DNA from: Mytilus edulis
Taxonomy: Eukaryota
Direction: 5' to 3'
Assembly: GCF_963676685.1 (NCBI RefSeq)
Contig: NC_092347.1
Coordinates: forward strand, 82,832,001 to 82,896,000
DNA length: 64,000 nt
The translations under genes and the position numbers were made by a program. The notes under the pieces were generated by a model. The model was not told the DNA's origin and did no database searches. It saw only the letters and a list, made by a program, of their open reading frames with translations. This document shows positions 648-53,294 of the stretch, in pieces; position 1 is the first letter of the stretch, and every line of letters starts with the position of its first letter.

Positions 648-2459
648 AAAATGCTACCGCAGTATTGAAGTCGTACATGGGTGCTGGAAACTCTAAGATC
701 ATGACAACAGTTTACAAATATGTGACTGGCATGTCTACTTCCTATATAACTATGGCTGATGACGGTTGTATACCAATGGCATATGAAGCAGCGGGTCAGA
801 ATGCGGATGGAGGTAAATCTATATACTTTTAACATATTGACCCCAGCGTTTCAATTATATGTTGTATTTGTAAACACAAGATACGGACCTAACTGTACAC
901 GAATAATCTTCATTTTAAGAAACAAATTATAATAAGTCTACAGGAATGCAGCACACGTATTCAACCTTACTGAAATAAAAGAGAGACAAAAGAGAGATAC
1001 TAAAGAATCAGACGGAATAATTAAATAATTAATGCTATGATTGCAAAAAAAACTAAAAATGATAAAAAGACAAACAACAGTATACAAAACAAAACATAGA
1101 AAACTAAAGAATTCAGCAATACGTTTCACATCAAAAACTGTGGTTGATCTCGTGTTCTCTGTTAATCTTGCTCCATATGTGACACAAGATATAAGATAAA
1201 CAAAATACCATAAAGCCCAATGATAATCTATATTTACATTTCAGGTGGATTCCAAATGACAGTTGAGTTTTTTGGAATAACACCAGGTATTGCAGATACG
1301 TCAGTCTTCAATGAACCAGCTCAGTGTGTAAGTATTGTTTTCGTTTTTCTTTTTGGAGAAACTAATTATAACCACTATGCTTATTGCATACAACAATTTT
1401 CTATTATATCATTTCAATAATATACATATATCCCTGCCAGTATCAACGTAAAGAGCATTTAGGCTGATTCACGAGCACTAAACCGCCCAAACAAAGAAAT
1501 ACAAACCACGTGACAATTAAAACTGGTGATGCAGCAACAAAAGTTGTATACAAAGTAAGGCATTTCTATAGATATTACTATCACATGTACAAACGAGTGT
1601 CATTTAAAATTGAGAATGGAAATGGGGAATGTGTCAAAAAAACAGCAACCCGACCATAGAGCAGACAACAGCCGAAGGCCACCAATGGATCTTCAATGCA
1701 GCGAGAAACTCCCGCACCCAGAGGCGTCCTTCAGCTGGCCCCTAAACAAATATGTATACTAGTTCAGTGATAATGAACGTCACACTAAACTCAGAATTGG
1801 CATGTTTTATTGTTACATATTTAAAACACAACCACGTGTTTATTTATTTCCAATGCTTACAATATAAGAATAAAAAGTCCAAGATGGGGTATCATCGAAT
1901 TTCCAGTAAGACAACTCTCTACTAAGGACCAATAACGTAGAAGTTAACAATTAAAGGTCACTATTTTCAGTTTTCCATATGTATGTCATTTTTGTTTTGT
2001 AAATTATAACAAGTGTGGACACAGATCTGTGTGGATAGTATGTGTGAATGTTTGACTGATTTCTGACAAAGAGACTTCTCTTGGGTTTTTTCACGCAGGG
2101 TTCTACATTATACTGTGTTGCACAGTGACAGCCAACCTGAGCCAAATACTAAACATTAGCAATGTTTTTAATCTAATATTAAGTTTTAATGTTCAAGGTT
2201 GTCATGGAGGAGAAACAAATTGCATTGATTTCCAAATAATCATGATAAAATAAATGCCACATCTTTGATATTGGATACATTTGTAGCTAGAAGAGGAACA
2301 CATTAGGTTTCTTTCTGCATTGTGTGATTTTTTGAAAGGGAGATGGTATCTGATTTTGTAAATTATAATAATTGTGGTTTATAATTTTTAATCGTTTTAT
2401 TTCTTTTACAGGGTGCAAATGTACCTGCATTTGCTGGAATTGGAGTTGGAAGACGATAA
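648..2459 (+). CDS. Ependymin-related protein, paralog 1 (3' part only; exons 1-3 lie upstream of the window)
   Basis: GT-AG exons 648-812 (165 nt, NATAVLKSYMGAG...MADDGCIPMAYE), 1245-1327 (83 nt, GGFQMTVEFFGITPGIADTSVFNEPAQC) and 2412-2459 (GANVPAFAGIGVGRR*). AATAAA at 2497-2502. Has the ependymin C-x-P and F-x-x-P-x-x-C motifs, and exon sizes and phases match the other three paralogs. Confidence 0.9.
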
Positions 2460-4202: not shown

Positions 4203-5574
4203 TCAGATCAAAATAGTTACAAAGCCAAACAAGTACAATTAATAATGTCTCGAATTTTAGTCATTTTGATCTTCATGGAAATGAGATGTACCAATGCTAA
4301 TACAACTGTATATCAAATAACATTGACTTATGAGAGGTGGTTTCCTTTAAACTAGCATACAAACAAACTTTCACTTGTAAAATATGAATTTATTTATGGT
4401 GAACCAACCCCTGAAGTAGTAATCGTGCAGTCGGGTAATAGTGGATGGATACCGAAACTGGTGGGTGGATACTTGTCAAATATTTCAGAGCTTCAAAGTC
4501 AATAGGCTATGACTAAGGGTGTGTCCAAATAATCTCCATGGAAATGAGATGTATCAATGCTAATAATTTTATATGTACAACTGCATACCGAATATCATAA
4601 AATTACACTAGTGGTTCTCCATAAACTAACCTAATCACAAACTAATAAATTGTTGACGCCACCATCGCAGACGCCGGAAACAGAATTCATATGTCTCGCT
4701 TGTGGCTTGCTTTTGATTCTATCAAGGCAAGACAACAAATCATTAGATGAACTTTAATTATAATTTCCCATATCATTGTTGACAGTATGAAGAATATGAA
4801 CAAAGCGCTTGTTTTGTTTTTTTCACAAAATGCAGTTGATGAGTTTTCAAAAGCTTATAATAATAATCATACATTACTGCTATAGAATCAACTTATGTTT
4901 ATTCAAAATTTACTGACACGGTTGACCTTAGAGAACCTTTTGAAACGACATCTGTACTGTGCTGATAAAATGTGTCAAAAGAAAAGAAATATGCTCAGTT
5001 ACGATAGTTTACATACGAGAATGAAAAATGTTTGATGTACACACAAACACATATAGTCACCAATAAATAGTCTATCAATAAGTAAATGCGAAAGCAATTT
5101 ACAGATCTAACATTGTTGGGTTGATGTTTAGACGAGTTGTATAAACATAATGTACACAGCCATGTTTCACCATCATTGCTGGTGATCCGATGGATAAATC
5201 TGTTGTAGAGTTGTCACTGAATCAGACGTACTTATAAATGTAATTATTTTCTGTGACTGTATGTTGCATTAATTTGTAGGATCCTTTACTATAGACAATT
5301 TAGCTGATCTGTAACAATAACATCTCCATGCCTTATATATCATGTACTTTAGTACGACGCTAGATTAACACTGACGAGGAAAGGTAACACACGACCACCG
5401 AAAGCTTTATTATTGTGAAGCTAAGGTGGCCGTGTAGTCTAGCGGGACGGCTACAGTGCAGGCGATTTCTCAGCAGCATGGGTTCGAATCCCGGTGAGGG
5501 AAGAACAACAAATTTGCGAAAGTAAATTTACAGATCTTTATACATTGTTGGGTTGATGTTTAGACGAGTTGTAA

Positions 5575-5614
<40 letters not shown>

Positions 5615-6780
5615 CAATTATTCAGACGTTTGATTATATATATATATACTTTTAATGAGAGCCCAGGTGGTCGTGTGGTCTAGCGGGACGGCTGCAGTGC
5701 AGGAGATTTGGTGTCACGATATCACAGTAGCATGGGTTCGAATCCCGGCGAGGGAAGAACCAAAAATTTGCGAAAGCAAATTTACAGATCTAACATTGTT
5801 GGGTTGATGTTTAGACGAGTTGTATATATATATATATGCCTTATATATCATGTACTGTAGTACGCCGCTAGATTAAAACTGACGTGGAAAGGTAACACAT
5901 GCCCACCGAAAGCTCTTTTTTTGAGAGCCCAGGTGGTCGTGTGGTCTAGCGGGACGGCTGCAGTGCAGGCGATTTGGTGTCGCGATATCACAGTAGCATG
6001 GGTTCGAATCCCGGCGAGGGAAGAACAAAAAATTTGCGAAAGCAAATTTACAGATCTAACATTGTTGGGTTGATGTTTAGACGAGTTGTATATACATTAT
6101 GTACACAGCCATGTATCACCATCATTGATGGCGATCCGATGGATACATCTGTTGTAGGGTTGTCACTGACTCAGACGTACTTATGAATATAATTATTTTC
6201 TGTGACTGTATCTTACATTAATTTGTGGGATCCTTTACTATAGACAATTTAGCTGATCTGTAACAATATCATCTTCATGCCTTATATATCATGTACTGTA
6301 GTACGCCGCTAGATTAAAACTGACGTGGAAAGGTAACACATGCCCACCGAAAGCTCTTTTTTTGAGAGCCCAGGTGGTCGTGTGGTCTAGCGGGACGGCT
6401 GCAGTGCAGGCGATTTGGTGTCACGATATCACAGTAGCATGGGTTCGAATCCCGGCGAGGGAAGAACAAAAAATTTGCGAAAGCAAATTTACAGATCTAA
6501 CATTGTTGGGTTGATGTTTAGACGAGTTGTATATATATGAACAGATGTATCCATCGGATCGCCATCAATGATGGTGATACATGGCTGTGTACATAATGTA
6601 TATACAGCTCGTCTAAACATCAACCCAACAATGTTAGATCTGTATATATATATATATACAACTCGTCTAAACATCAACCCAACATTGTTAGACCACACGA
6701 CCACCTGGGCTCTCAAAAAAAGAGCTTTCGCTGGCCGTGTGTTACCTTTCCTAGTCAGTTTTAATCTAGCGGCGTACTAC

Positions 6781-9654
6781 TGTCGGTGATTTAGAGACAG
6801 TTTAACTTACGCGTCAAACGTTAACACTACTTTTAACGCCGTTTCCATTCACATTGTTAACGTCATCATATCTTCTGTTAACGTTGTTCTATTGTTATGT
6901 ATCATGTTACTATATCGAGTTGAGATTATACGATCAAACGAACCAGACGTTGTTTTACTGCCTGTCCAGACTTTAAGTTAACCCATCCGTCACATTGGTG
7001 CCGTGACCAGGATAATGACGAAAAAGAAAGCCATTAGAGTGGGTCATCGAGGAGCCGCACGGAGATTAATTTCAAAGATTGAAGAGGAATTAGAGAAAGA
7101 AACAACACAACGCGACGAAATAGAAAGCCTATGTGAAACTTTGATTCATCGAAGTACTCAGACACAAAACAAGAATAACACAAATTTACCAACTCTTCAT
7201 GTATTTACCGATGCTTCAACTCATGCGTACGGCGCATGCGCGTACATCATGTATGACAGAAAACCAACAATAGTAATGGCAAAGAATAGAGTTGCGCCTA
7301 TCAAGACTATAACTTTACCAAAACTAGAGCTCATGGGGGCTGTAATTGGAGCAAGACTTGCTGATCATATTTGCAAAAACTTTCCGGAAACTTTCAGTGA
7401 AATACAATTTTGGAGTGATAGTCATTTCGTACTTAGTTGGCTTGCATCCGTAAAACCACAGAGACAATTTATCAAAAATAGAATTGAAGAAATTAAAAGT
7501 TTGTGTGGAGATAATGTATGGAGATATTGCCCTACGAAAGACAATCCCGCAGATCTGCTTACACGTGGTATAACATCTGAAGAATTGCAACAGAACGAAA
7601 TATGGTTTAGTGGACCTAAATGGTTAAACAGCAAAGACGATTGGCCGACATGGAACGGAAACAATGTAACGTCTAGTGTATGTACAACAATGTCGGAGAA
7701 CGATGACAAAATTGAAACAATGGAGAATAATCAAAATGTATGTATTGGTATAGGAGAAATCATAGATATCGAACGGTACAATTCTTATAGAAAATTAACC
7801 CGAATTACCGCATATGTAATGAGATTCGCAACAAACTGCAGAGCAAAGGAAACTGAACGAAAGAAAGATTTATTACGTATTGATGAAATTGAAAATGCAA
7901 AATTCCTATGGATAAGATATAAACAAGGTAAAATATTTAGTGACGAAATAAATTGTATAGATAATTCTACAAAACGTAAAACACTTGTGCGACAATTAAA
8001 GCTCTTTCTAGACGAAAAGCAATTATTACGTTGTGGTGGTCGCCGAATACACAATGCGACAGTAGGAGAAACAGTCAAGTTTCCATATCTGTTACCGGCA
8101 AAGGACCGTCTTACACATTTGATAGTGTTAGAAGCACATGAGAACACACTACATTCAGGTATAAATATCACTCTAGCATACATACAACAAACATTTTGGA
8201 TTCCAAAATTAAGACAGTGCGTGAAATCTATATTGATGAAATGTGTAACGTGCCGAAAAGTAATCGGAAAATCTTATCCCGCACCAGAAATTCCACCATT
8301 ACCAAAGGAGAGAGTTCAAGATGCTACACCCTTTAGCATAACCGGTGTAGACTTCACAGGAGCGCTAACGATAAGGAACAGACACAACGAAGAATCGAAG
8401 GCTTACATTTGCCTATTTACATGTGCTGTCACTCGAGCAGTACACTTGGAATTAGTTTACGATCTCAGCGAAGAATCTTTTTTATTGTGTTTCCGGAGAT
8501 TTGTAAGTCGACGATCAGTGCCGAAAATAATGATGTCAGACAATGCGCTAACATTTAAAGCTGCTTCAAACGAAATTTCACGACTTTGCAATTCTAGAAA
8601 AGTTAAAGAAAATATTCAGAATTATGGCATTGAATGGAAATTCATCCCAAATAGAGCTCCATGGTTCGGGGGCATGTGGGAAAGAATGATTGGCTTAACA
8701 AAAACATCACTTAAGAAAGTATTAGGACGTGCACATGTCAACGATGAGACTCTAAGGACTGTATTAACAGAGATCGAAGCCACACTCAACGATCGACCAG
8801 TGACGTATATTTCAACAGATATCAGAGATCCGGAGCCGCTTACACCATCCCATCTTATACATGGACGTAGGATAACAACTTTACCGTATGTATCGTCAAA
8901 TAGTGCTATTGACAATCTAAATGTATGTGAATTAACACACACAAACTTGAACAATCAAGCGATACGACAGAGACAATTGATTGAGAACTTCTGGACAAGA
9001 TGGAAAGGAGAATATCTTACTTCATTGCGAGAATATCACCAAAGAGCTGGAGTCGACGTTCGGAAGATTAAAGAAGGCGATGTCGTTCAGATACACGACG
9101 AATCGAAGCGCGTGCATTGGAAACTTGGAGTTGTGCAGGACACTATTAAAGGCAAGGACGGTTTAGTTCGCGTTGCTATGGTGCGTACCAATTCAGGAGT
9201 TACAAATCGACCCGTGACGAAACTCTACCCATTAGAAGTCAACAGCATGGAATGTTATCTGAGACGAAGTGAACGAAGAAACTAACGTGTGTGAACAGAC
9301 TTGTTAATTTTTCTTATTTGTGAAAAGACTGTCAAATTCAAAGAGTTTTTTACGTAATCTAATAATTTAATATTTTTTGTTCTTTCCGCATGCCACTATA
9401 TATCACAGCTAATGGACATTGCATCTGGTGGCCCCGAGTATGTCGGTGATTTAGAGACAGTTTAACTTACGCGTCAAACGTTAACACTACTTTTAACGCC
9501 GTTTCCATTCACATTGTTAACGTCATCATATCTTCTGTTAACGTTGTTCTATTGTTATGTATCATGTTACTATATCGAGTTGAGATTATACGATCAAACG
9601 AACCAGACGTTGTTTTACTGCCTGTCCAGACTTTAAGTTAACCCATCCGTCACA
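6781..9654 (+). mobile_element. BEL/Pao LTR retrotransposon, internally deleted, recent insertion
   Basis: Identical 214-bp LTRs (TG...CA) at 6781-6994 and 9441-9654. 5-bp target-site duplication (TSD) ACTAC at 6776-6780 and 9655-9659. Primer-binding site TGGTGCCGTGAC (tRNA-His type) at 6996. Confidence 0.96.
7015..9285 (+). CDS. BEL/Pao truncated polyprotein: short Gag N-terminus fused to RNase H + integrase
   Basis: RNase H motifs LHVFTDAS..AYG, PKLELMGA, WSDS, NPADLLTRG. Integrase HHCC (H..LH...CVTC) and DDE (GVDF, SDNA, WERM). BEL-type C-terminus FWTRWKGEYL...RPVTKLYPLE. No protease or RT motifs. First ATG at 7015. Confidence 0.93.
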   Translation: MTKKKAIRVGHRGAARRLISKIEEELEKETTQRDEIESLCETLIHRSTQTQNKNNTNLPTLHVFTDASTHAYGACAYIMYDRKPTIVMAKNRVAPIKTITLPKLELMGAVIGARLADHICKNFPETFSEIQFWSDSHFVLSWLASVKPQRQFIKNRIEEIKSLCGDNVWRYCPTKDNPADLLTRGITSEELQQNEIWFSGPKWLNSKDDWPTWNGNNVTSSVCTTMSENDDKIETMENNQNVCIGIGEIIDIERYNSYRKLTRITAYVMRFATNCRAKETERKKDLLRIDEIENAKFLWIRYKQGKIFSDEINCIDNSTKRKTLVRQLKLFLDEKQLLRCGGRRIHNATVGETVKFPYLLPAKDRLTHLIVLEAHENTLHSGINITLAYIQQTFWIPKLRQCVKSILMKCVTCRKVIGKSYPAPEIPPLPKERVQDATPFSITGVDFTGALTIRNRHNEESKAYICLFTCAVTRAVHLELVYDLSEESFLLCFRRFVSRRSVPKIMMSDNALTFKAASNEISRLCNSRKVKENIQNYGIEWKFIPNRAPWFGGMWERMIGLTKTSLKKVLGRAHVNDETLRTVLTEIEATLNDRPVTYISTDIRDPEPLTPSHLIHGRRITTLPYVSSNSAIDNLNVCELTHTNLNNQAIRQRQLIENFWTRWKGEYLTSLREYHQRAGVDVRKIKEGDVVQIHDESKRVHWKLGVVQDTIKGKDGLVRVAMVRTNSGVTNRPVTKLYPLEVNSMECYLRRSERRN

Positions 9655-10076
9655 ACTACAGTACATGATATATAAGGCATGAAGATGTAATTGTTACAGA
9701 TCAGCTAAATTATCTATAGTAAAGGATCCTACAAATTAATGTAATATACAGTCACAGAAAATAATTATATTTATAAGTACGTCTGAGTCAGTGACAACTC
9801 TACAACAGATGTATCCATCGGATCGCCATCAATGATGGTGATACATGGCTGTGTACATAATGTATATACAACTCGTCTAACATCAACCCAACAATGTTAG
9901 ATCTGTAAATTTGCTTTCGCAAATTTTTGGTTCTTCCCTCGCCGGGATTCGAACCCATGCTACTGTGATATCGTGACACCAAATCGCCTGCACTATGTTT
10001 TAATTTATAGATTAATTTGCTGCATTTTCTTTATTTTTTAATATATTTTCAGTAACATATTAAAAAGTTTGTAAAT

Positions 10077-13000
10077 TTATTTTATGCAGATTGACGGAAT
10101 ATCAAAAATGGAAACATTCATAGGTGCCACCACTATTCCCATGTATTCCGCCGCCATTTTCATATCTTCTGCAAGTAAAAAAAACGAAACAACTTTTGTG
10201 TCATCTATATAAAGCTATTATCGTTTGGTAACCTACTACACTAATTTACAAATCTCTGCATTATGTTCTCAAATGGATAGCTATGTTAATGAAAATTACT
10301 CCAGACCTACACCATTCGCAGAAATGTTTTGTTAAGTTGCTCCGAGAGAATTGTTTGTCTCTGACATTGCATAAGGGGTAGGAATGACCTATTATGTAAA
10401 TTTTTAATCAATCAATCATTTTTAGAGTGGAACTTTGTTACCAAATATGTTGAGGTAGCATCAAGTAAACAATGCACATCATTTAAAAGTTATTGCAAGG
10501 ATTTAATCTAATGTACACAGCGGCAATGTACTCCCTCAACACGAGATGACTGCGTACTGTGTATTTGTGCATTTCGTATATACCAAATAACTGCACAGGT
10601 CTTGTAGTTGACTCATTATAGATATATCTAAAGGACAGATAATATTTTTGAAATAAATACATTTATCATAAAATGTTTATTTTAAGATAAGAAGCTAAAT
10701 TTACCGCCTGTTTCTGTAATACCATTGCCATCGACCATTACTGGTATACATCCATCGTCTGCCATTGTGAGATGTACATCAAGGTTATCTCTGGTAAAAT
10801 GGTACATTGTAGCTTTCAGAGCTGTCTTTCCGGATCCAATGAAAGACTCTGTAACTACTTCTGCGTTTTCTAAAACAAACAAGGAAACGGTTGCTATACT
10901 TAAAGCCATAAAAATACAGTCTGATTTCTTTATGTTGATTTAGTAGTTGATTCCCGCGATTTTCTGTAAAATATCACATACTACACATATCAGTGGTTAC
11001 AAGGGATGTTCATTTTCTAAATCCCGTGTTTATGTTGGTTTTTTATTCTTTTTCTCAGACCCCACTCTATTGTCTCACTTTATCCCACATCTCATTATTT
11101 TAACCCCTATAAACCAAAAATTCATAAAAGTAAAATCACAAAAATACCGAACTTCGAGAATTCTAAATGAAAAGTTTCTAAGTAAATGGCAAAATAAAAA
11201 GCTCAAACACATAAAACGAATAAATAACAAATGTCATACAATATTTCAATGGTGGCCGGTTAAGGCCATTTCGCGTTTTCACCCATCATATTCTATAGTT
11301 TTCGTGTTTTCGCTATTAGAACATGAAAGGCGAAAAAACGCGAAATGGCCTTAACCACCTGTCACCATTATATTCCTGACTTAATTAATTAAACAGTAAT
11401 TTTCTTATGAAGGAAATGGTGGATTCAACCTGTTTTAAAACTAATACTGTTCTTTCACGTACTGAATAATGTAATTGTGAGAATTCAAACACTTATACAA
11501 CGTGTAGGCAAACAAATAAGACATCTTATACTATCTTACTTGGTATACAACGTGTCGGCAGACAAATAAGACATCTTATACTATCTTACTTGGTATACAA
11601 CGTGTCGGCAGACAAATAAGACATCTTATACTATCTTACTTGGTATACAACGTGTCGGCAGACAAATAAGACATCTTATACTATCTTACTTGGTATACAA
11701 CGTGTCGGCAGACAAATAAGACATCTTATACTATCTTACTTGGTATACAACGTGTCGGCAGACAAAAAAGACATCTTAATATACTATCTTACTTGGTATA
11801 CAACGTGTCGGCAGACAAATAAGACATCTTATACTATCTTACTTGGTATACAACGTGTCGGCAGACAAATAAGACATCTTATACTATCTTACTTGGTATA
11901 CAACGTGTCGGCAGACAAATAAGACATCTTATACTATCTTACTTGGTATACAACGTGTCGGCAGACAAATAAGACATCTTATACTATCTTACTTGGTATA
12001 CAACGTGTCGGCAGACAAATAAGACATCTTATACTATCTTACTTGGTATACAACGTGTCGGCAGACAAATAAGACATCTTATACTATCTTACTTGGTATA
12101 CAACGTGTCGGCAGACAAATAAGACATCTTATACTATCTTACTTGGTATACAACGTGTCGGCAGACAAATAAGACATCTTAATATACTATCTTACTTGGT
12201 ATACAACTTGGCTCAGAGCTCGATACATTCATCGTAAAACATGCACCACCTTTGATAACATACTGAAGACCCTACAATATAAAACATGCACCACCTTTGA
12301 TAACATACTGAAGACCCTACAATATAAAACATGCACCACCTTTGATAACATACTGAAGACCCTATAATATAAAACATGCACCACCTTTGATAACATACTG
12401 AAGACCCTATAATATAAAACATGCGCCACCTTTGATAACATACTGAAGACCCTATAATATAAAACATGCACCACCTTTGATAACATACTGAAGACCCTAT
12501 AATATAAAACATGCACCACCTTTGATAACATACTGAAGACCCTACAATATAAAACATGCGCCACCTTTGATAACATACTGAAGACCCTACAATATAAAAC
12601 ATGCACCACCTTTGATAACATACTGAAGACCCTACAATATTAAACATGCACCACCTTTGATAACATACTGAAGACCCTACAATATAAAACATGCACCACC
12701 TTTGATAACATACTGAAGACCCTACAATATAAAACATGCACCACCTTTGATAACATACTGAAGATCCTACAATATAAAACATGCACCACCTTTGATAACA
12801 TACTGAAGACCCTACAATATAAAACATGCACCACCTTTGATAACATACTGAAGACCCTACAATATAAAACATGCACCACCTTTGATAACATACTGAAGAC
12901 CCTACAATATAAAACATGCACCACCTTTGATAACATACTGAAGACCCTACAATATAAAACATGCACCACCTTTGATAACATACTGAAGACCCTATAATAA

Positions 13001-14998
13001 AAATAGTATATAAGTAAAAGTAGTGTTTTTTTAGACTTCATTTTAATGCAACTAGGGATATTATGTTTTTAATACTTTTCAAAATGTCTTCTGTATTTTT
13101 CACAATTAATAGTAACAACATGAAAACATACGTTATGTTATGTTTCTCGTTTGAATTATAACTTTTACATTTGTCATTTCGGGGCCTTTTATCGCTGACT
13201 ATGCGGAATGGGTTTTACACATTGTTGAAGGTCTTACGGTGAACTATTAATAGTATTAATCTCTGTGTGGTTTTGTCTTTTGTAGATAGTTGTCTAATTG
13301 GCAATCATGCCACATTTCTTTTATATGTATAACTCCGATGGCCAATCCGAAATTATTTGTTTTTAGATTTTGCATTAAATTCTTTTAATCTACAATTTCG
13401 AAAAATTATGTCCTCGCAAAAATCATATTTACCCGATCGCGAACTACAGTTCAAAAATGTAATATAGTAAATATTTTCATCAAGAAAATATTTTTAATAA
13501 ATTTCAAATTCCAAACTGCTGCTACGATTGAAAGAATCAACTTTCATATTTTAGGGCAAAATACTGGCCATTTCGAGTGGCCAAATCCCAGATAATAAGC
13601 AACCTTAACGACGAACATTTATAATCCCTAACACAAACCTCTGTCTTCATAAATTTTCTCTATTTATTTGGTAACTCTTAATGGTTCTTTCTTTTAGTCA
13701 ATTTTGATACACTTATGAATGATGCTATTTTCTTTTATATATTCATGTATTTTATTTCGTTTTGATTGGTTTTTTTTTAACAACTTACTGTGCTAAAGTC
13801 TTGATAAACTTGTTGTAAATATTCAGGTCCACCATTAAGACTTACAGTTTGATTTACATAAACTTTCCGAATGGTTTCATCGACAACTGTGTCCTGAGAC
13901 ATCTGTACGAGAAGGCAGATTTATGTATTTAAACTTAAAATATTAAAAAAAATAAAAAATAGAATAACCAGCACAAACATTTAAGGATGTTCGTTTTGGA
14001 ATTTTTATAAGATTTTCGGAATCCTCTGGATTTATCCATTTGAATGCCTTAAAAGTTTTGCCCATTAACCCCCATTTTTCTTTTTATAAATCTTTTACAT
14101 GAATTGTATGATTATTAGCCACCTGTAAAAGTCTTATATAAATCTTTGTTTTTTTTTTTAAATATATTTGAGAACTTAAATATGTCAAAGATAAAGCTAT
14201 GAAAAATCAAGAGAGAACATTTTCCCGCCAAAATTTCAATGGCTAATATCTCGAAAACCCACACATTGTTTTTTTTTTTTTTGTTCCGTTATTAATCCCC
14301 TATCAATATATAATAGTGTTATTAAAAGCTTGTTATGTTGAAACTGAGTAGCGAACTTCCTTAAATATGACGATAGAAATAAAGTATGATCATTTGTGAA
14401 AGTTAAGACACTTCTGAAACAAGACTACTTTTAAAACTGAATTTTATTCAACAGACACGAGCTATAAGCTGGTGATTTTAGGAATCAATAAAAAATATTA
14501 TGTTAAAGACCACCATCAGTCAAAACACACATCGGAAACGTATAGTGTGCTTTGTTTTACTCAATTTGGATGAACATGATAGGCGGGTTTGCTTTATTAT
14601 TTTATTTGGATCACCTCATATGTCAATAAAATCTTTACTTTATGATAAGTTACGGAAGATGTTTCCAAATATGTTGCTTTCTTTTGGTTATGTATGACGT
14701 TGTCTTGCGGTCTCAGTGAAGTATAAATAAATAATGAATAAATAATGAAAACGGATCTATTTCCTCCCTCCTTTGTTTTTTTTAACAAACTACACAATGT
14801 GAGGACATTCTTTCGTGTATGCCGCTAATATCTTGTTTGAATATTGTAAAATAAATTAAAACTAACTTGCGTATGGTATTCATGTCCATCAACTGTTTTT
14901 GTATTTGAATCAATATATACAGTCCCCCTCCATTGTTTCGGGGGACAGCATGATAGTACTAAGGCAGGTAAAGCCAGAAGTAGGATGTTCTGGAACAT
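10077..14998 (-). CDS. Ependymin-related protein, paralog 2 (5 coding exons, ~193 aa, secreted)
   Basis: Exons 14998-14867 (signal peptide MFQNILLLALPALVLS then CCPPKQWRG), 13902-13789, 12271-12196 (GLQYVIKGGACFTMNVSSSEPSCIP), 10869-10705 (MADDGCIP) and 10168-10077 (EDMKMAAEYMGI...SIFDIPSICIK*). All GT-AG with consistent phases. Confidence 0.88.
11495..12207. repeat. 50-bp minisatellite (~14 copies) containing the exon-3 splice donor of EPDR paralog 2
   Basis: Unit acatcttatactatcttacttggtatacaacgtgtcggcagacaaataag. Its reverse complement contains TGTATACCAA|gtaagatag. Confidence 0.95.
12236..12998. repeat. 45-bp minisatellite (17 copies) containing the exon-3 splice acceptor and first 36 exon nt of EPDR paralog 2
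   Basis: Unit aaaacatgcaccacctttgataacatactgaagaccctacaatat. Reverse complement atattgtag|GGTCTTCAGTATGTTATCAAAGGTGGTGCATGTTTT. Confidence 0.95.
13985..14360. mobile_element. Kolobok-like MITE in intron 1 of EPDR paralog 2
   Basis: TTAA on both sides (13981-13984 and 14361-14364). Terminal inverted repeats (TIRs) GGATGTTCG / CGAACTTCC. Confidence 0.6.
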
Positions 14999-15153
14999 TA
15001 CGAATTCTTTGAACACAGACAAGTAAACTTTAAGATTTATAAATAGTGTAATTGTAAACATGTTCATATCAATTTCTACTGATTAACATGATAAAGCATG
15101 CACCAGTGCGGATTTTCACCTTGAACAATAATCTCGGATTTTACTTTTTTTCT

Positions 15154-29985: not shown

Positions 29986-30920
29986 AGGGTAAATAATCGC
30001 TGTGAATATATCTAGATATTATGGTAACCATGCAAAATCATAACTATCCAAATATTTTAAAATTTTATTCGAAAAGGGATACCCGTAATAGTTAATCAGC
30101 ATTTGCTAGCATCAACACATCACATCATACTCTGCAATGAAATAAAAGGCAAAATTATTATCACCATCATCATAACTACAATGATTGCGTTATATAATTA
30201 TCAAAAGTACCAGGATTATAATTTAGTACGCCAGACGCGCGTTTCTTTTTCATAAGACTCACCAGTGACGCTCAAATCAAAATAGTTATAAAGCAAAAAA
30301 AGTTCAAAGTTGAAGAGCATTGTGGACCCAAAATTCCAAAACGTTGTGCCAAATACGGTTAAGTTAATCTATGCCTGGAGTAAGAACATCCTTAGTTATA
30401 TAATGGTAAACAAAGAATTGTAACTATTAAACACTATTTTAAACAAAACAAAAACATGGAAACAAAATGCTATTTTTTACAAGTTAGTTTAAAACTGCCA
30501 GCAATTCTGCATAGTGTTTACCCTTTTTTATTGATTTTGTGTGAGGTATCAAGTAAGCCGTTATTTCAGAATATAGTGTTTTTCAATCAAATTGCAAGAT
30601 TTAAACATCGGTAAACTACTTTTGCCTAATAACATTAATGGTACCATTTTTATTTTGCAACTGATGCACATTTCGATAAAAAATAAACAATATTATTTTT
30701 TTTTGTGATGCTCATGTCAAAACATCTTAAAATAAAATCCAAATCTTATTTCAGATAAAAAGAGCTAATATTCGAAACGGAAAAACAAGTTTATCCAATA
30801 CCGGTGGAGGAATCAGAGCTTTGCATGATGGAAATATATATTATATATATTTTGAAATGATTTGTTTAATTTTGTTAAAGCATATTTTAATAACAAAGAA
30901 TTCTGACTAAATTTACTTAC

Positions 30921-33900
30921 ACAACTGGCTGGTAAATTAAATACAGATTGATCAGTCGCAACTGCTTCAATTCCCATATACTGTATTCCCATTTTAACGG
31001 ATTCTATATAAAAAACAACGATAAAACGGTTACAGTGAGACAAGTCAATGACGTCATTTATACAAATTTATGTAACAATTTTGAGAAATATAGATAATTG
31101 GTAAAGCTCATTATTCTGAATAGTTTGCTCCTTTTAGATTTACTCTATTTTTATCGTTTCAAAAAAAAATAGACAAAAAATGGATTTTACCCCTATGTTC
31201 TGGTTGGCAGGCAGGGTCATTAGACACATTTTGTTAATCTACTACCCTAATGATAGTTTTGGACAAGTTTGGTTTTTATCTCAGCAGTTTCAAGGGATAG
31301 ATTTTGTAAAAAGATTACAAAAATTTACAAAAATTGTTAGAAATCAACAATAAAGGGCAGTAACTCCTTAAAGTTGAATTTCTAGTACATCTCAATTTAC
31401 TGAACAATATTGCTGTTTACAGTTTTTCTCTATCTATAATAATATTCAGGAAAATAGCCAAAAACTGCAAAATTTCCTTAACATTGCCAATTCAGGGGCA
31501 ACAACCCAACTACCGATTTTTTTATTTGTCTTAAAATTTCAGGACAGAGAGATCTTAAATTGATGAACTTTTTTATCTGTCAGATTTGCTCTAAATGCTT
31601 CAGTTTCAGAGTTTAAATTCACTATGCATTTTTACCCCTGTAATCGTTTTGTAGCCATGGTGGCCATCTTGGTTATCGGGCTAGGTCATCAAACACATTT
31701 TAAAAACAATTAGATACCCCAATGATGATTGTGGCCCATTAATTTCAGAGGAGAAGATTTTTATAAAAGTTAACAGACGACGACGAACGACGACGGATCA
31801 CGAACGCCAAGTGATGAGGAAAGCTCTTTTGGCCCTGAGGGCCAGGTTAGCTTAAAACTAAAAAAAACACGTATCTAAAACTAATATATCAATAAAGAAA
31901 ATATCAAACAACTAATAAATTTAGTGTAAAGACACCATTAACAGTAAAAAACACCTACATAACATTGTGTTAGATAGGTGTGTAGATTGTTTTGATATTA
32001 ATCAAGCCGAGGCTTTCCCATGTGAATTGTTTTACAATTTGTCTTTTCAGCACCGTTGGTTGCTTGCACCCTTTTTGTTTGAACTATTTAGCATTTCGTA
32101 TGATGGGTAGTGGATTTATTAGCTGAAATAAAAGTATGCGACTCTTTAAAGGTTGTAAATACCTCCTTTTCTGTTCATTCCTGCACCCTCGTAAAAAATT
32201 GGAACACAGCCATCATCTGCAACAGTCAGGTAAACCAACATTTGTTCATCTTCAAATCTATACATTGTTGTTTTCACCTTAGCTGCTCCAGCACCCATGT
32301 ACGACTGATTCATTACAGTTGCATTAGCTGGAATAAAAATAAATAACTGCTACAATCGTTTTTTAAAAACTGGAATCCAAACTTTCAGTTCATAATCTTT
32401 ATGATATTGTTATGGGCAGAAAAGAAAAATGCTGATAAGTATTATACTACAATCACAAATAACTCAACTTTAAATGTCTTTCTCTTAAAAATGAAAATTA
32501 TACATTTTCTGCCTGATGTTCTGCCTCTGAAGCACTTTGATGAATTTATCCTCATCAGTTAAGCACAGCCAAACATTTGAAAGCCAGGAATGCGTAAACG
32601 CCCTGCCACTTTGAGATGAGATTTAATACCAAAAAGGACTTTAACGTATACGTAATATCAAAATTTATCCAAAGGTCAACTTTGCTTAAAGGGAGTCGAC
32701 AGCTTTTTTTTTTTAATATTTTGTGATGCAAATTACTTACTAAAAGAAAGATACAATAAGAATGCAGTCTTATTCTCATTTTTACCTTCAATTGATTTTA
32801 TATGTATGATCTAAAGCTTATATGCTAATCAAACGCAGGAGTCTCGTTCAGAGCGTTTAAGCGTTGAGGTATTATTGACCAAGAGAAGGACATTGAATCA
32901 AAGTACTACACAGTAAAAACTTCATGTTAACTGTGTTTACATATTTCTATTTATTTCTTGTATTTCTCTGTTTGAATATTGTATGATGAATGCATATAGG
33001 AATACGGAGATATTACTATTTTGGTAATATTTTGTTAATAATTTGATAGTGTTAGAGCTAGCAACTAAAACTATCTTTTTTGTAACTTACTTGGTATGCA
33101 GCCTGGTTCCGTGGTTGTGATATTCATCTTCGTACATTTGTTATCCCGGACTATGTATTCCATACCCTGCACAATTAAATAGAAAGATCAATATCACAAA
33201 AAACAACACAATTGTAATGCTTCATCAAAGGAGAAAAGCTATTAATAGAGCATTTGCATAATTCACGTATCAGGATACGTGCACAGATCGACGAATACGT
33301 ATCGAAAAGATTTGTTTACAATAATGATTTTACCCCGATCTCAAATAAAATTTAATGCATTATATAATATTTTCATCGGGACCAACTTGACTTAATTTAT
33401 CCTTTCCTCATATACGTGTTATACGATACGTCGATACGGATACGCCAGCAAATTCGTGATTAATGCAAATGCTCTAATGATCAGAATTTCGCCATTAAAA
33501 GTATATTCGGTCTATAATTTTAAAACATTAAAGAAGATAATAATATAACTTCACATTCCAGGCATATTTTGCACCTGTCCTAAGTCAGAATCTGATGTAC
33601 AGTAGTTGTCGTTTGTTTATGTAATATATACGTGTTTCTCGTTTCTCGTTTTGTTTATATAGATTAGACCGTTGGTTTTCCCGTTTGAATGGTTTTACAC
33701 TAGTAATTTTGGGGCCCTTTATAGCTTGTTGTTCGGTGTGAGCTAAGGCTCCGTGTTGAAGGCCGTACTTTAACCTATAATGGTTTACTTTTTAAATTGT
33801 TATTTGTATGGAGAGTTGTCTCATTGGCACTCACACCACATCTTCCTATATCTATATATGTCTTATATTATGTATTATGTATAGTAATGACTTTTTAATT

Positions 33901-38430: not shown

Positions 38431-41400
38431 ATGTTTCGTTACACAGCTTTGATTGTGCTCCCAGCTTTGGTTTGGTCTTGCTGTCCACCAAGTAAATGGG
38501 AAGGATCCGAGTATATTGCTCTTGGTTCCACAGATGGCAAGGGACAGGGACATTACACTGAGGTAACTTTACATATCGCAAAAAACTGAAGAAAAGTGTA
38601 AGGTGTTCATTTCTTTTTTACTGATGCTTGATTAAAAAAAATTATTTCTATCAAATTATTAATCATTTCACTTTAACCTATAGCTACTCTATCATTGACC
38701 ATGGACAAAAGAAGTATCGGTGTTACAGACAATCATCCATATAAGTAATGATTGAGATTTGTTTTCGGTAAACATGGAGTCTGGAGCCTTTAAACGCAGT
38801 CAGGAGACTATAAACTTAGAATTGAGAACTCAGTTGTAATTCAGAGGGTGTCATTTATAACCGTGTATCATATTTGGTTTTGTTTATTTTGTACATAATT
38901 AGATGTTAGTTTTCTCGTTTGAATAGTTTTACATGTTATGTTATGTAGGTGCTTTCTTGAGCTTACTAATTGCTATTTGTTTTGCTTATTGTTGAAGGTC
39001 ATAAGGTGACATATAGTAGCTAATAAATACGTCATTTGGTTGCTGGTGGATAGTATTCTCATTGTCAAACATGCCATATCTTCGTATTTTATATATACGA
39101 CCAATCTTTGAACCAGTTTCAATAATAGATTGTCTTATCGGGTCATACATGTATGCATGCATGCTCATAGTACATGGAAGCTCAAAAGTATAAATGTGTG
39201 TATTTAGTCTGATTAAGCACTTTAAGAATTCATAATTTAAATTTCAAAGAAATAATTCCAAAATAAGAAAAAAAGATTTTGGACGATATCTATAATACTA
39301 ATGCAGCACAATGCATTAGCGAAAGAATAAATATATTTAAATAGATTGATTCTTTATTGTCGTAAGTCGTTGAATCAAAGATCAGATAAATTAAAAAAAA
39401 AAAAAATTATTTTAACGATTTTGAATAAAGGGTCAATGTTTTTGAATATTTCAACGAAATGAGCAGATACCTCAAATTATGCTCTCTGAATTATTAAATT
39501 CGTACGAGGAGGTATCTTTGATGAAGTTGATAGAATTTAAAATGGAAACTTTTTTACTCCATGCAGCTTGAAATCTTCAGTTTCAGTTTCCGTGGTTGGC
39601 AATTATGCAAAAAAAAAAATGTTATCCTTTCAAATATATATACATTTTAGTTGTGAAACATTATCTCGAATGGTTTTCAAAAGAGGTAATTATCCCCCTT
39701 ACATACAAATACAAACTCTTGAAATAGAATTATAGCTGATTATTCTATTTTTAGATTTCACAGAATGTAACTGTAGATACAGACATGAGGAGAGTATTTA
39801 TAACACAACAACTTTCAATGGACGGTCAGGGTATGGAACAGAAAATATTACAAGATTATAGTTCTGTAAGTGAATAAATATATCGATCGTCATACTAATT
39901 CTTAAATGTTATCTACTTTAACTACCAGTTGATTATAGTGTATTATTATTTTTTTCCCTGTCTTTTGCAATTCCTTCAAAACTTTGATCATTACTCCAGT
40001 GACCAATCTCCAGCATTCAAACCTGTTTTTGCTTTTATGATGACTTATAAACATAATGCTGAAAAGAAATTTTAAAAGATTTAAAGTCATTACAATAAGT
40101 TTGTTATATAGTTAACTATGTGAGAGTCATATCTTTACGGATATGTTACCGGATTTAGTATCCATTGGAACTCAACTGAGAGTAAAATGAGTATTTGAAT
40201 AAGCCTTTATTTTCACTTATATTAATAAAAAAATAAAAAAATGCGTCAATTAAACTTTTGTCTTTTTCTCATGAACAGGGAGAACAATACGTAACAACAA
40301 CAAAAGATGGTATGGAAATTAGTTGTATGAGAATGCCAATTAACTCAATTGAGCCCGGATGTGTTCCAAGTAAGTATAGTGTTTTGTTGACATTTGTTTA
40401 TCTTTTTGACATTCGATTTGGTCATTGTGTTGTCTGTCGAATGACTGTTCTGGTTACCTCTTGGTGTTGTCTGTCGAATGACTGTTCTGGTTACCTCTTG
40501 GTGTTTTCTGTCGCATGAGTATTCTGGTTACCTCTTGGTGTTTTCTGTCGAATGACTGTTCTGGTTACCTCTTGGTGTTGTCTGTCGAATGACTGTTCTG
40601 GTTACCTCTTGGTGTTTTCTGTCGCATGAGTATTCTGGTTACCTCTTGGTGTTTTCTGTCGAATGACTGTTCTGGTTACCTCTTGGTGTTGTCTGTCGAA
40701 TGACTGTTCTGGTTACCTCTTGGTGTTGTCTGTCGAATGACTGTTCTTGTTACCTCTTGGTGTTGTCTGTCGAATGACTGTTCTGGTTACCTCTTGGTGT
40801 TGTCTGTCGCATGAGTGTTCTGGTAACCTCTAGGTGTTGTCTGTCGAATGACTGTTCTGGTTACCTCTTTGTGTTGTCTGTCGAATGAGTGTTCTGGGAA
40901 CCTCTTGGTGTTGTCTATCGAATGAATGTTCTGGTTACCTCTTGGTTATGTCTGTCGAATGAGTGTTCTGGTTACCTCTTGGTGTTGTCTGTCGAATGAC
41001 TGTTATGGTTACCTCTTGGTGTTGTCTGTCGAATGAGTGTTCTGGTTACCTCTTGGTGTTGTCTGTCGAATGAGTGTTATGGTTACCTCTTGGTGTTGTC
41101 TGTCGAATGAGTGTTCTAGTTACTTCTTGGTGTTGTCTGTCGAATGAGTGTTCTGGTTATCTCTTGGTGTTGTCTGTCGAATAAGTGTTCTGGTTACCTC
41201 TTGGTGTTTTCTAATTTTTATTGTATCAGTGTTAAACTTTTGGATACGTTCTACACTGATTGTATGGCGTTTTAATGTAAAAAATAATCAGCAGTATTTT
41301 AAATAGCCCGCATGCTATTGTATCAACTATAAAATTAATTCGCTTTTTCGGCTCATACCTAAAGATATCTGAAAATGTTTTCTGTAACAAACCTTCGCAG

Positions 41401-43462
41401 AAACAGTCTGTGCACCTAATTTGATCAAATAATTCGAACTGCATTGCATAAAATGAAAATAAAAAAAAATCATGCAAGACTTACTTAAATTAATTATACC
41501 TTTTGGGACGAGAAAACAATCCGTTGACACCAAAACGCAAAGGCCACCAATAGACCAACATTCAATTTTCTGACTACTAATTAGATATGGAAAATTTGAA
41601 CTAACATAAAATTTGTTTAATGGCGTCCATTTCAAAATGTGGGACAGGGGGTTAGCCTGAACAATATGATTATGTAATGGAATATGCTTACATCTTCAGA
41701 AACAAAATGTTCTCAAATGATTTGATATTCACTATTTTATATTTTACCTTTTTTTGTAGAGAATCATACAAAAATAATTCAGTCTTATTTCGGAGCTGGA
41801 AGCTCAAAGGTTATGGCTACAATGTACAAATTCAATATGGGCCAGAACGTTATCTATGCCACTATGTCCGACGATGGATGCATACCTCTGGCTTATGAAG
41901 CATCAGGAGCAACTGAAGATGGAGGTAATAGTTCGGAGCTACTTTAATTATTTCGATCAGATTGACAATTAAATGCATGGGAAAGCTTGATACTAAATTT
42001 GTTGTATGTTATACTCAATTTGTGTTAACACGTCTTGAACGGATTGCCTTGGAGATGTAAACAACTGCAGTTCGTTTTTTTTTATGGCAATGTGTAGTTC
42101 ATCTTAAGCAAACTTTAAGACAAACCTTTGGCATATGAAACCTCGGAAGAAACTGAAGGTGCAGGTAATAGTAAGAGCTACTTTAAGTATCTTCTATCAA
42201 AGTGAATATCTAATTCCTATAAATAACTAACTTGAAAAAAAAAATGTAGGATTCGCAATTTAAATTATTTATAGCGCCATTATATAATATTTTGATATTG
42301 TCCAGTTGGGGGAAAACATGATATTTAATTTGTTTATGTTATATTTAATTTGTGTACACACGTCTTGAGCGGATTTCCAAACAAATGTAGTTCGTTTTTT
42401 CATGGCAATGCCTTGATCATCTTAACCGGAATACAAGGCAAAGACAAAATATCAGATATCTGGCAGTTTCAATTCACGATATATATAGCATAACTTAAAC
42501 TGATAAACTGACATCCGTGTACTATTAAAAGTATAAACATATGTTGGAACTGCTTTTTTGAATATCACTAACATCATCAAAGAAAGGCACCATTTCCCAA
42601 CGTATGTTTTATAAATGCAAAAACTTAAAAAAATCAAATCATAGCAATCAAACTTAACTTTAAAGGATTCAAATTTTAAATTAATTTAATTGATCGCACA
42701 TGTGTATACAACTGTAACTTTTTTTTTATAATTTGACCTCATTTCGAAGAATGTGAAGAAAACATTCCCTTCCAGCTAGAGCACTTATTTTAACTCCTGG
42801 TGTCTGTTTGATTAAAATTACACAAATATTTAGTTATATATGGTGAAATGCTCATATGTTGTTACTTTACACTTATATTAATTTCTTATAGGTGGATATC
42901 AAATGACTGTCGAGTTTTTCGGAATTACCCCAGGAGTTGCATCCACATCTGTATTTCAAACACCAAAAAATTGCGTAAGTAGTATTTCACATCAGAATTA
43001 CCTTTATATATTCATCCACAAAAGTACTTAAGATTTTTATGGCACATTTTTTTTTGTACACATCAATTAGAAGAAAATGTAAAATTATGACTGCATTAAT
43101 GAAAAATATGAATTTACTGTAACGTCATTAAAAAGCAAAATTTGGGGATATGCACTCCAGGAACATTTAGGATAATCTGACATGGAGAAGAAACGTCGCC
43201 CAAATTATTATTTTGTTGTTAAAATGCAGCTAATTACAAAATACGTTCAGCATAACTATCTGTTTGTATCAGGGGTTGTGTCAAACAGTAAATAGGTTGA
43301 ACGACTTTGCAGTTTAACTGTATTTATTGGTGCTTCATAAATGTATAACCAAATAAACGGAAATGATTCATACTAAAATATGTTCTTGAACTTGATTACT
43401 CTAATGTTTATTCATTTTTTTAGCCGATGCCAAAACCAGTCATATCCGGACTTGGAAAATAA
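38431..43462 (+). CDS. Ependymin-related protein, paralog 4 (6 coding exons, ~206 aa, secreted)
   Basis: Exons 38431-38562 (MFRYTALIVLPALVWS then CCPPSKWEG), 39755-39865, 40279-40369 (EPGCVP), 41760-41924 (MSDDGCIPLAYE), 42892-42974 (GGYQMTVEFFGITPG...SVFQTPKNC) and 43424-43462 (PMPKPVISGLGK*). Confidence 0.92.
40425..41210. repeat. 37-bp minisatellite (~21 copies) in intron 3 of EPDR paralog 4
   Basis: Unit tgtctgtcgaatgactgttctggttacctcttggtgt. Confidence 0.95.
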
Positions 43463-52194: not shown

Positions 52195-53040
52195 CAGATG
52201 GCATGATCATATGACTTCTCTATGACGGTTCCATGGCATGATCATGTGATATATCTTTGACGATTACATGATCTCATGTTCCTCTTTGTCGATGGCATGA
52301 TCATGTGATATATTTTTTACGATTACATGATCTCATGTTCCTCTTTGGCGATGGCATGATTGTGTGACATATCTTTGACGATTATATGATCTCATGTTTC
52401 TCTTTGTCGATGGTAAGATCATGTGATATATCTTTGACGATTACATGATCTCATGTTCCTTTTTGGCGATGGCATGATAGTGTGATTACTGTTATGGGAT
52501 TAGATGATCTCATGCCTCTCTTTTGCGATGGCATGATCGTGTGATTACTGTTGGGGGATTACATGAACTCATGTTCCTTTTTGGCGATGACATGATTGTG
52601 TGATTACTCTTTTTGGGGATAACATGATCTCATGCTCCTCTATCATGTCTATGGCGATGGCAAGATTTTGTGATTACTCTTTTTTGGAATTACATAATCT
52701 CATGTTCCTCTTTGTCGATGGCATGATTGTGTAAACTATTGTTTAGGGATTAGATGATCTCATGTTCAACTTTGGCGATGGCATGATTGTGTAATTACTC
52801 TTTTTGGGGATTACATGATCTCATGTTCCTCTTTGTCGATGGCATGATCGTGTGATTACTCATTGGCGATGACATGATCTTATGTTCCTCTTTGTCGGTG
52901 ACATGATCTCATGTTCCTCATTGGCGATGGCATGATCGTGTGATTACTCTGTGGCCATGGCATGATCGTGTGATTCCCCTTTGACGATTGCATGATCGTA
53001 TTGTTCCTCTGTGTCGATGGTTTGATCGTGTAGTTCCTCT
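52195..53040. repeat. Degenerate ~29/59-bp minisatellite rich in CATGAT/GATC
   Basis: Repeating gatggcatgatc(a/g)tgtgat... and gattacatgatctcatgttcctctttg subunits. Confidence 0.85.
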
Positions 53041-53294
53041 TAAACTAAAGAATTTGAGAGTTAATGATATAGATTTGGTCGTTTTGACAATCTGAATGAT
53101 TTATTAAGAGGGAAACGCACTGATTGCCTTTGCTTTACATGTGTTTCGACAACCTATATTCTGCTAAATACTAATGGCTTTGTTTTAATTTTTAACTATA
53201 ATTTTAACTGGCTCATGTAACAAACTTAACACATTTATACCAAAACATGCTGTTGTTATTTCAAAAACAAATATTTTTCTTTTTTAGTTTCAAA

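Follow-up and report, generated by a model that had tools for sequence, protein, structure and literature searches.

A 76-nt exon of the mussel Mytilus edulis is set between two tandem arrays made of its own edges, with 17 near-identical copies of its splice acceptor on one side and 14 identical copies of its splice donor on the other, and only one pair of these sites is productive. The gene to which the exon belongs is annotated and conserved, and the structure is a two-sided case of a known kind of repeat, the mirage minisatellite. In amphioxus, where the name was applied, "mirages" are tandem repeats that extend across exon-intron boundaries, at 5' and at 3' boundaries (PMC3087553, PMC3902484). 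We think it fairly probable that two young mirage minisatellites flank exon 3 of an intact ependymin-related gene, that their outer copies are mostly silent, and that the arrays are tolerated by-products of a minisatellite-rich genome and not a regulatory device. Taken alone, the structure is ordinary in kind, though extreme and striking. It is of interest mainly because it offers a natural experiment and a ready-made test case for the choice among identical splice sites. For donors, human F7 is the example, and far less work exists on how one acceptor is picked from a set of identical ones.

The host gene and its conservation

The gene lies on the minus strand of the window, by which we mean the whole stretch of 64,000 nucleotides that was analysed. 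It is formed by five exons:

14867..14998, minus strand: exon 1, 132 nt; start codon, signal peptide and CCPPKQW motif; donor CAA/GTTAGT; matches the N-terminus of RefSeq isoform X1
13789..13902, minus strand: exon 2, 114 nt, phase 0 at both ends; skipped in RefSeq isoform X2
12196..12271, minus strand: exon 3, 76 nt; phase 0 at its start and phase 1 at its end
10705..10869, minus strand: exon 4, 165 nt, phase 1 at both ends; conserved ependymin-family segment with DDGCIP
10077..10168, minus strand: exon 5, 92 nt; stop codon TAA at 10079-10077

The exons were joined only for a frame check and for an equality test against database proteins, while the searches ran exon by exon. The joined model has 579 nt and 192 codons, with a single stop at its end. 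When the innermost splice sites are used, it is equal to the Mytilus edulis RefSeq protein XP_071169784.1, "ependymin-related protein 1-like isoform X1" (192 aa), and the same test shows that the model minus exon 2 is equal to RefSeq XP_071169785.1, isoform X2. An earlier reading of the locus, made from the sequence alone, had taken all exons other than exon 3 to be intact, which the equality with the RefSeq protein supports. Isoform X2 is given by RefSeq for both M. edulis and M. galloprovincialis; in it exon 1 is joined straight to exon 3, in frame, to yield 154 aa. M. galloprovincialis and M. trossulus have orthologues of the same length, 192 aa, at 97% and 93% identity, and the 25 residues of exon 3 are invariant among the three species.

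The protein belongs to the ependymin family (Pfam PF00811), a membership that rests on precomputed Pfam matches: PF00811.26 is precomputed on XP_071169785.1 and on the database protein P0015, and XP_071169784.1 shares the 90%-identity cluster of P0015, for which the names "ependymin-related protein 1-like" and "2-like" are given by NCBI. By tblastn of the exon peptides, three paralogues with homologous exons were found in the window, which form with this gene a four-paralogue cluster. Along the whole of its length, exon 3 is homologous to the paralogue exons 3 at 33166-33089 and 40279-40371. The first of these has the same boundaries, AG/GGT and CCAA/GTAAG, and for this reason the real exon 3 could be fixed as 12271-12196. 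A library search with exon 4 led to XP_071169785.1, and a further protein search with exon 4 returned genomic ORF fragments from Logan only, with no transcript products.

The paralogues also differ at their 3' ends. In the counterparts of exon 5, at about 1230-1330 (plus strand), 30920-31005 (minus strand) and 42890-42975 (plus strand), a GT donor comes right after the matching Cys codon and a further exon follows. The array-bearing paralogue stops inside exon 5 (10077-10168, minus strand; ..SICIK, then stop) and is without a terminal mini-exon.

The two arrays

Exon 3 and its surroundings can be divided into three parts, which are given here in the direction of transcription:

12235-13003, minus strand: acceptor array; Tandem Repeats Finder gives period 45, 17.1 copies, 98% matches, no indels
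12208-12236, minus strand: unique core of exon 3, 29 nt outside both arrays, from the unit listing and direct reading
11494-12207, minus strand: donor array; Tandem Repeats Finder gives period 50, 14.2 copies, 98% matches

Tandem Repeats Finder and a unit-by-unit listing thus agree with the sequence-only reading that the 76-nt exon (12271-12196, minus strand) lies between arrays of its own splice sites. That reading had given 16 extra acceptor copies and about 13 extra donor copies, and the listing counts totals of 17 and 14, numbers that come from the assembly. Contigs built from short reads, such as those of Logan, collapse arrays of this type. It had also put the unique part of the exon at about 28 nt, for which 29 nt (12236-12208) were measured. 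Nothing but this core distinguishes the innermost sites from the outer copies.

According to the listing, each acceptor unit consists of 10 nt of intron ending in AG and the first 35 nt of exon 3, and the exon start recurs every 45 nt, from 12991 and 12946 down to 12271. Every copy contains an in-frame TAG, since translation of the 45-mer in the frame of the exon yields GLQYVIKGGACFIL before it reaches TAG; from an outer acceptor, this stop is supplied by the TAG of the next acceptor itself. Acceptors 2-17 are alike for at least 45 nt upstream, barring single-base variants in a few units. Among the private variants, which are ordered along the array, are an A at -4 in copies 12-15 and a T-to-C change in copies 10 and 13. 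The outermost acceptor (12991), which had been credited with the strongest pyrimidine tract, does have the highest pyrimidine fraction between -40 and -3, but the gain is modest (0.61 vs 0.53 for the inner copies). The difference in branch-point context is of another kind: consensus motifs at -20 and -24 are present in the outermost copy only, and the inner copies have just one motif, at -9, which is unusually near the AG. The acceptor array is traversed by an open frame of 249 aa, for which a protein search gave no match.

In the donor unit, the final 12 nt of exon 3 are followed by GTAAG and some 33 nt of intron, and the last exon bases are found at 12196, 12143 and so on to 11540. The units are 50 bp long, except for copies 1 and 9, which have 53 bp, and the array ends in a truncated 15th unit that begins with GTTGTATA. 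All 14 donors read CAA/GTAAGA, so that the pseudo-sites are identical, as 9-mers, to the authentic 5' splice site.

In both arrays near-identical units are placed head to tail, each unit combines an exon edge with the adjoining intron and its splice signal, and the innermost copy continues into the real exon, as in a mirage minisatellite. The edge units are the most diverged within the arrays, and the near-identity of the units indicates that the arrays are young. Within the limits of a search of the 1.37-Gb genome, the 45-mer and the 50-mer were found at this locus only. The unit-to-unit junction had no exact match in the metagenome contigs that were scanned.

Since the copy numbers rest on the assembly, and one mirage is noted in the amphioxus globin paper as misassembled in a draft genome (PMC3087553), it might be asked whether the arrays were made, or their copy numbers inflated, by the assembler. 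We regard this as highly improbable. The private variants (the A at -4, the T-to-C change, the 53-bp donor units) follow an order, the edge units are the most diverged, as they are in real minisatellites, and the locus is otherwise colinear with the paralogues.

Outcome of splice-site choice

All 17 x 14 = 238 acceptor-donor pairs were tried by script. One pair, the innermost (12271 + 12196), leaves the frame open to the normal stop, and the other 237 lead to an early stop. The script bears out what had been expected of the outer sites, namely that every acceptor but the innermost reaches a stop from the TAG of the next acceptor and that the downstream donors lead to a stop as well: after any outer donor the reading continues with SKIVY and then ends. 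The earlier figure of one productive choice among more than 200 site pairs can now be given exactly, as 1/238. Skipping of exon 3 is no way out, as it shifts the frame and brings a stop after four codons. Productive mRNA therefore requires the innermost site on either side, 12271 as acceptor and 12196 as donor. RefSeq isoforms X1 and X2 both use this pair, as gene models of a kind that favours open frames. Of the words sampled from 10600-15100, 0.11-0.13 are present in four RNA runs from two studies, which by estimate is about the share of the exons only; this is a weak sign of transcription, not of site choice.

How the productive pair is chosen can be approached by considering what the copies have in common. 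The inner acceptors are the same apart from a few variants and the donors are identical 9-mers, and for this reason the choice cannot come from the sites themselves. We suggest that it would come from the 29-nt unique core, with exon definition acting over the shortest acceptor-donor distance. At the donors, a tendency to take the first site in the 5'-to-3' direction, as in intron 7 of human F7, may also play a part. With units of only 45 and 50 bp, the productive acceptor must have its branch point inside a copy of exon sequence. The outer copies would then probably be mostly silent pseudo-sites, and any leakage to them would give early-stop transcripts. The precedents argue in the same direction. 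Two points speak against this explanation. By local signals alone the outermost, unproductive acceptor should win, since it has the ancestral intron with the -20 and -24 motifs upstream; and the donor-scanning rule derives from mammalian cells.

A regulatory function has been proposed for the arrays, in which the outer sites compete with the innermost pair, the copy number sets the early-stop fraction, and length polymorphism tunes the amount of protein in a heritable manner, as an expression dial that would work through nonsense-mediated decay. The stops that end 237 of the 238 pairs would suit such a device, and so would the better upstream context of the outermost acceptor. Moreover, there are precedents for a partial use of outer sites and for changes in length: in human IFI6 and CBS two proximal pseudo-donors are used beside the authentic donor (PMC1557585), and the amphioxus mirage arrays are length-unstable (PMC3087553). 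Other precedents point the opposite way. F7, LMNB2, PDGF and the amphioxus genes use the authentic site only or mainly; in LMNB2 and PDGF it is the authentic donor only, and in F7 IVS7 the pseudo-donors are identical, functional but silent, the most upstream site being taken in an oriented 5'-to-3' process (PMC1557585). In addition, the abundance of minisatellite arrays in the genome suggests a mutational by-product. We therefore consider the dial unlikely. A bolder version would make the recognition of exon 3 wholly dependent on the 29-nt core, so that the copy number, which is likely polymorphic, shifts the share of productive mRNA and perhaps drives isoform X2, as a heritable splicing rheostat; more broadly, the arrays would be one visible outcome of a process, peculiar to mussel genomes, that forms repeats and is targeted to junctions. 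As a whole we hold this version to be decidedly unlikely.

The same arithmetic of 1 in 238 could be taken to mean that silencing of the gene, or of this allele, is under way and that the arrays already divert most splicing to dead ends. The weak branch-point context of the inner acceptors would fit with this, and a cluster of four paralogues could cover the loss. The state of the gene speaks against it: the five exons are open and equal to RefSeq X1, the innermost sites are used in X1 and X2, the orthologues are intact in two sister species with an invariant exon-3 peptide, and the word share in the RNA runs fits the exons. The near-identity of the units marks the arrays as young, so decay would not yet show either way. 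On balance, silencing seems to us very unlikely, and the reading as tolerated, mostly silent mirage arrays in an intact gene is the one that we prefer.

Origin of the arrays

Both units are bracketed by short direct repeats. The 45-mer begins with TTTTA, which is present again directly behind the final unit, and the 50-mer begins with GTTGTATA, which is present again in the truncated unit that closes the array. Because such bracketing is what would be expected for slippage, the first duplication of each array most likely took place by slippage between these repeats. The arrays may have grown later by slippage or by unequal exchange of blocks. A block pattern is seen in the donor array, in which the 53-bp boundary-type unit recurs at copy 9, and the ordered variants, together with the diverged edge units, argue for growth of this kind and not for an assembler loop.

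Other origins were considered and rejected. A dispersed repeat or transposon was discarded because both units were found at this locus only, within the limits of the genome search, and the arrays are therefore to be seen as local duplications and not as a dispersed satellite. Slippage driven by hairpins was rejected on fold z-scores of -1.15, +1.44 and +1.53, and pairing of RNA or DNA between the two arrays on the finding of only two 12-nt inverted matches. One point weighs against our preferred explanation here, which is that two long arrays only 27 bp apart may not be independent events.

Minisatellite density and chance

The genome around these arrays is rich in minisatellites. Sampling at fixed positions on four chromosomes covered 200 kb and gave six of them, and from this sample and the 64-kb window, which together are small, the density is about 30 per Mb, or about 7% of the DNA. 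Some of those in the sampled stretches are very long (67 bp x60 at L001:1-4024; 85 bp x25 at L012:1-2102; 80 bp x100 or more at L019:1975-10000, running off the stretch).

With units of about 50 bp and an assumed few hundred thousand internal exons, the chance that a given junction is spanned can be estimated, as an order of magnitude only, at about 1.5e-3, and that of both junctions of one exon at about 2e-6. About one two-sided exon would then be expected per genome, or about ten if junctions were favoured four-fold, which is likewise an assumption. The repeats themselves are clearly beyond chance, and their placement is less surprising than it appears.

The window holds further repeats. In the plus-strand paralogue, a 37-bp x21 minisatellite lies at 40427-41212, 55 bp past the donor of exon 3 (40279-40371). 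It is purely intronic and without a splice site, and the same intron in two paralogues thus bears unrelated arrays. At 52198-53041 there is a nested tandem array with periods of 30, 59, 88, 149 and 177 bp and 62-82% matches, older and more decayed than the arrays of exon 3. Repeated units with a tRNA-like tail (GGTTCGAATCCC motif) flank a BEL/Pao element (6781-9654) at 5463-6700 and 9800-9993, and give the same short ORF peptide several times. They resemble a tandem cluster of SINE-like units that was split by the insertion of the BEL/Pao element.

Comparison with known systems

In the literature searched, no Mytilus paper on the combination of minisatellite, intron and splice site was found. 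The model of intron gain by Rogers, in which a tandem duplication spans AG/GT (discussed in PMC3087553), likewise places extra splice signals in a gene. Unlike in that model, no new intron or exon arises here, as the copies lie within existing introns and each of them leads to a stop.

Another likeness is provided by the human intronic minisatellites that bear donors (PMC1557585), namely those of F7 IVS7 (37 bp x5-9), IFI6/6-16 (25 pseudo-sites), CBS IVS13, LMNB2 and PDGF, in which the first monomer also spans the exon-intron boundary. These human VNTRs are one-sided and repeat donors only, so the acceptor array of the mussel has no counterpart among them. Moreover, the mechanism of the F7 type was tested in mammalian cells and not in molluscs.

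The mirages of amphioxus (Adh3, BflGb6, BflGb9, troponin C and PGBD5) are similar too. Their units likewise span an exon-intron boundary and repeat its splice signal, the units are highly similar with diverged edge units, and the genes are intact. In Adh3, globin, troponin C and PGBD5, splicing is reported to be left regular by these repeats (PMC3087553, PMC3902484). The structure described here is known from the sequence and from gene models, and its units are short (45 and 50 bp). It differs from the amphioxus cases in its molluscan host, in its copy numbers of 17 and 14, compared with 3-6 units in BflGb6, and in that both boundaries of a single 76-nt exon were amplified together.
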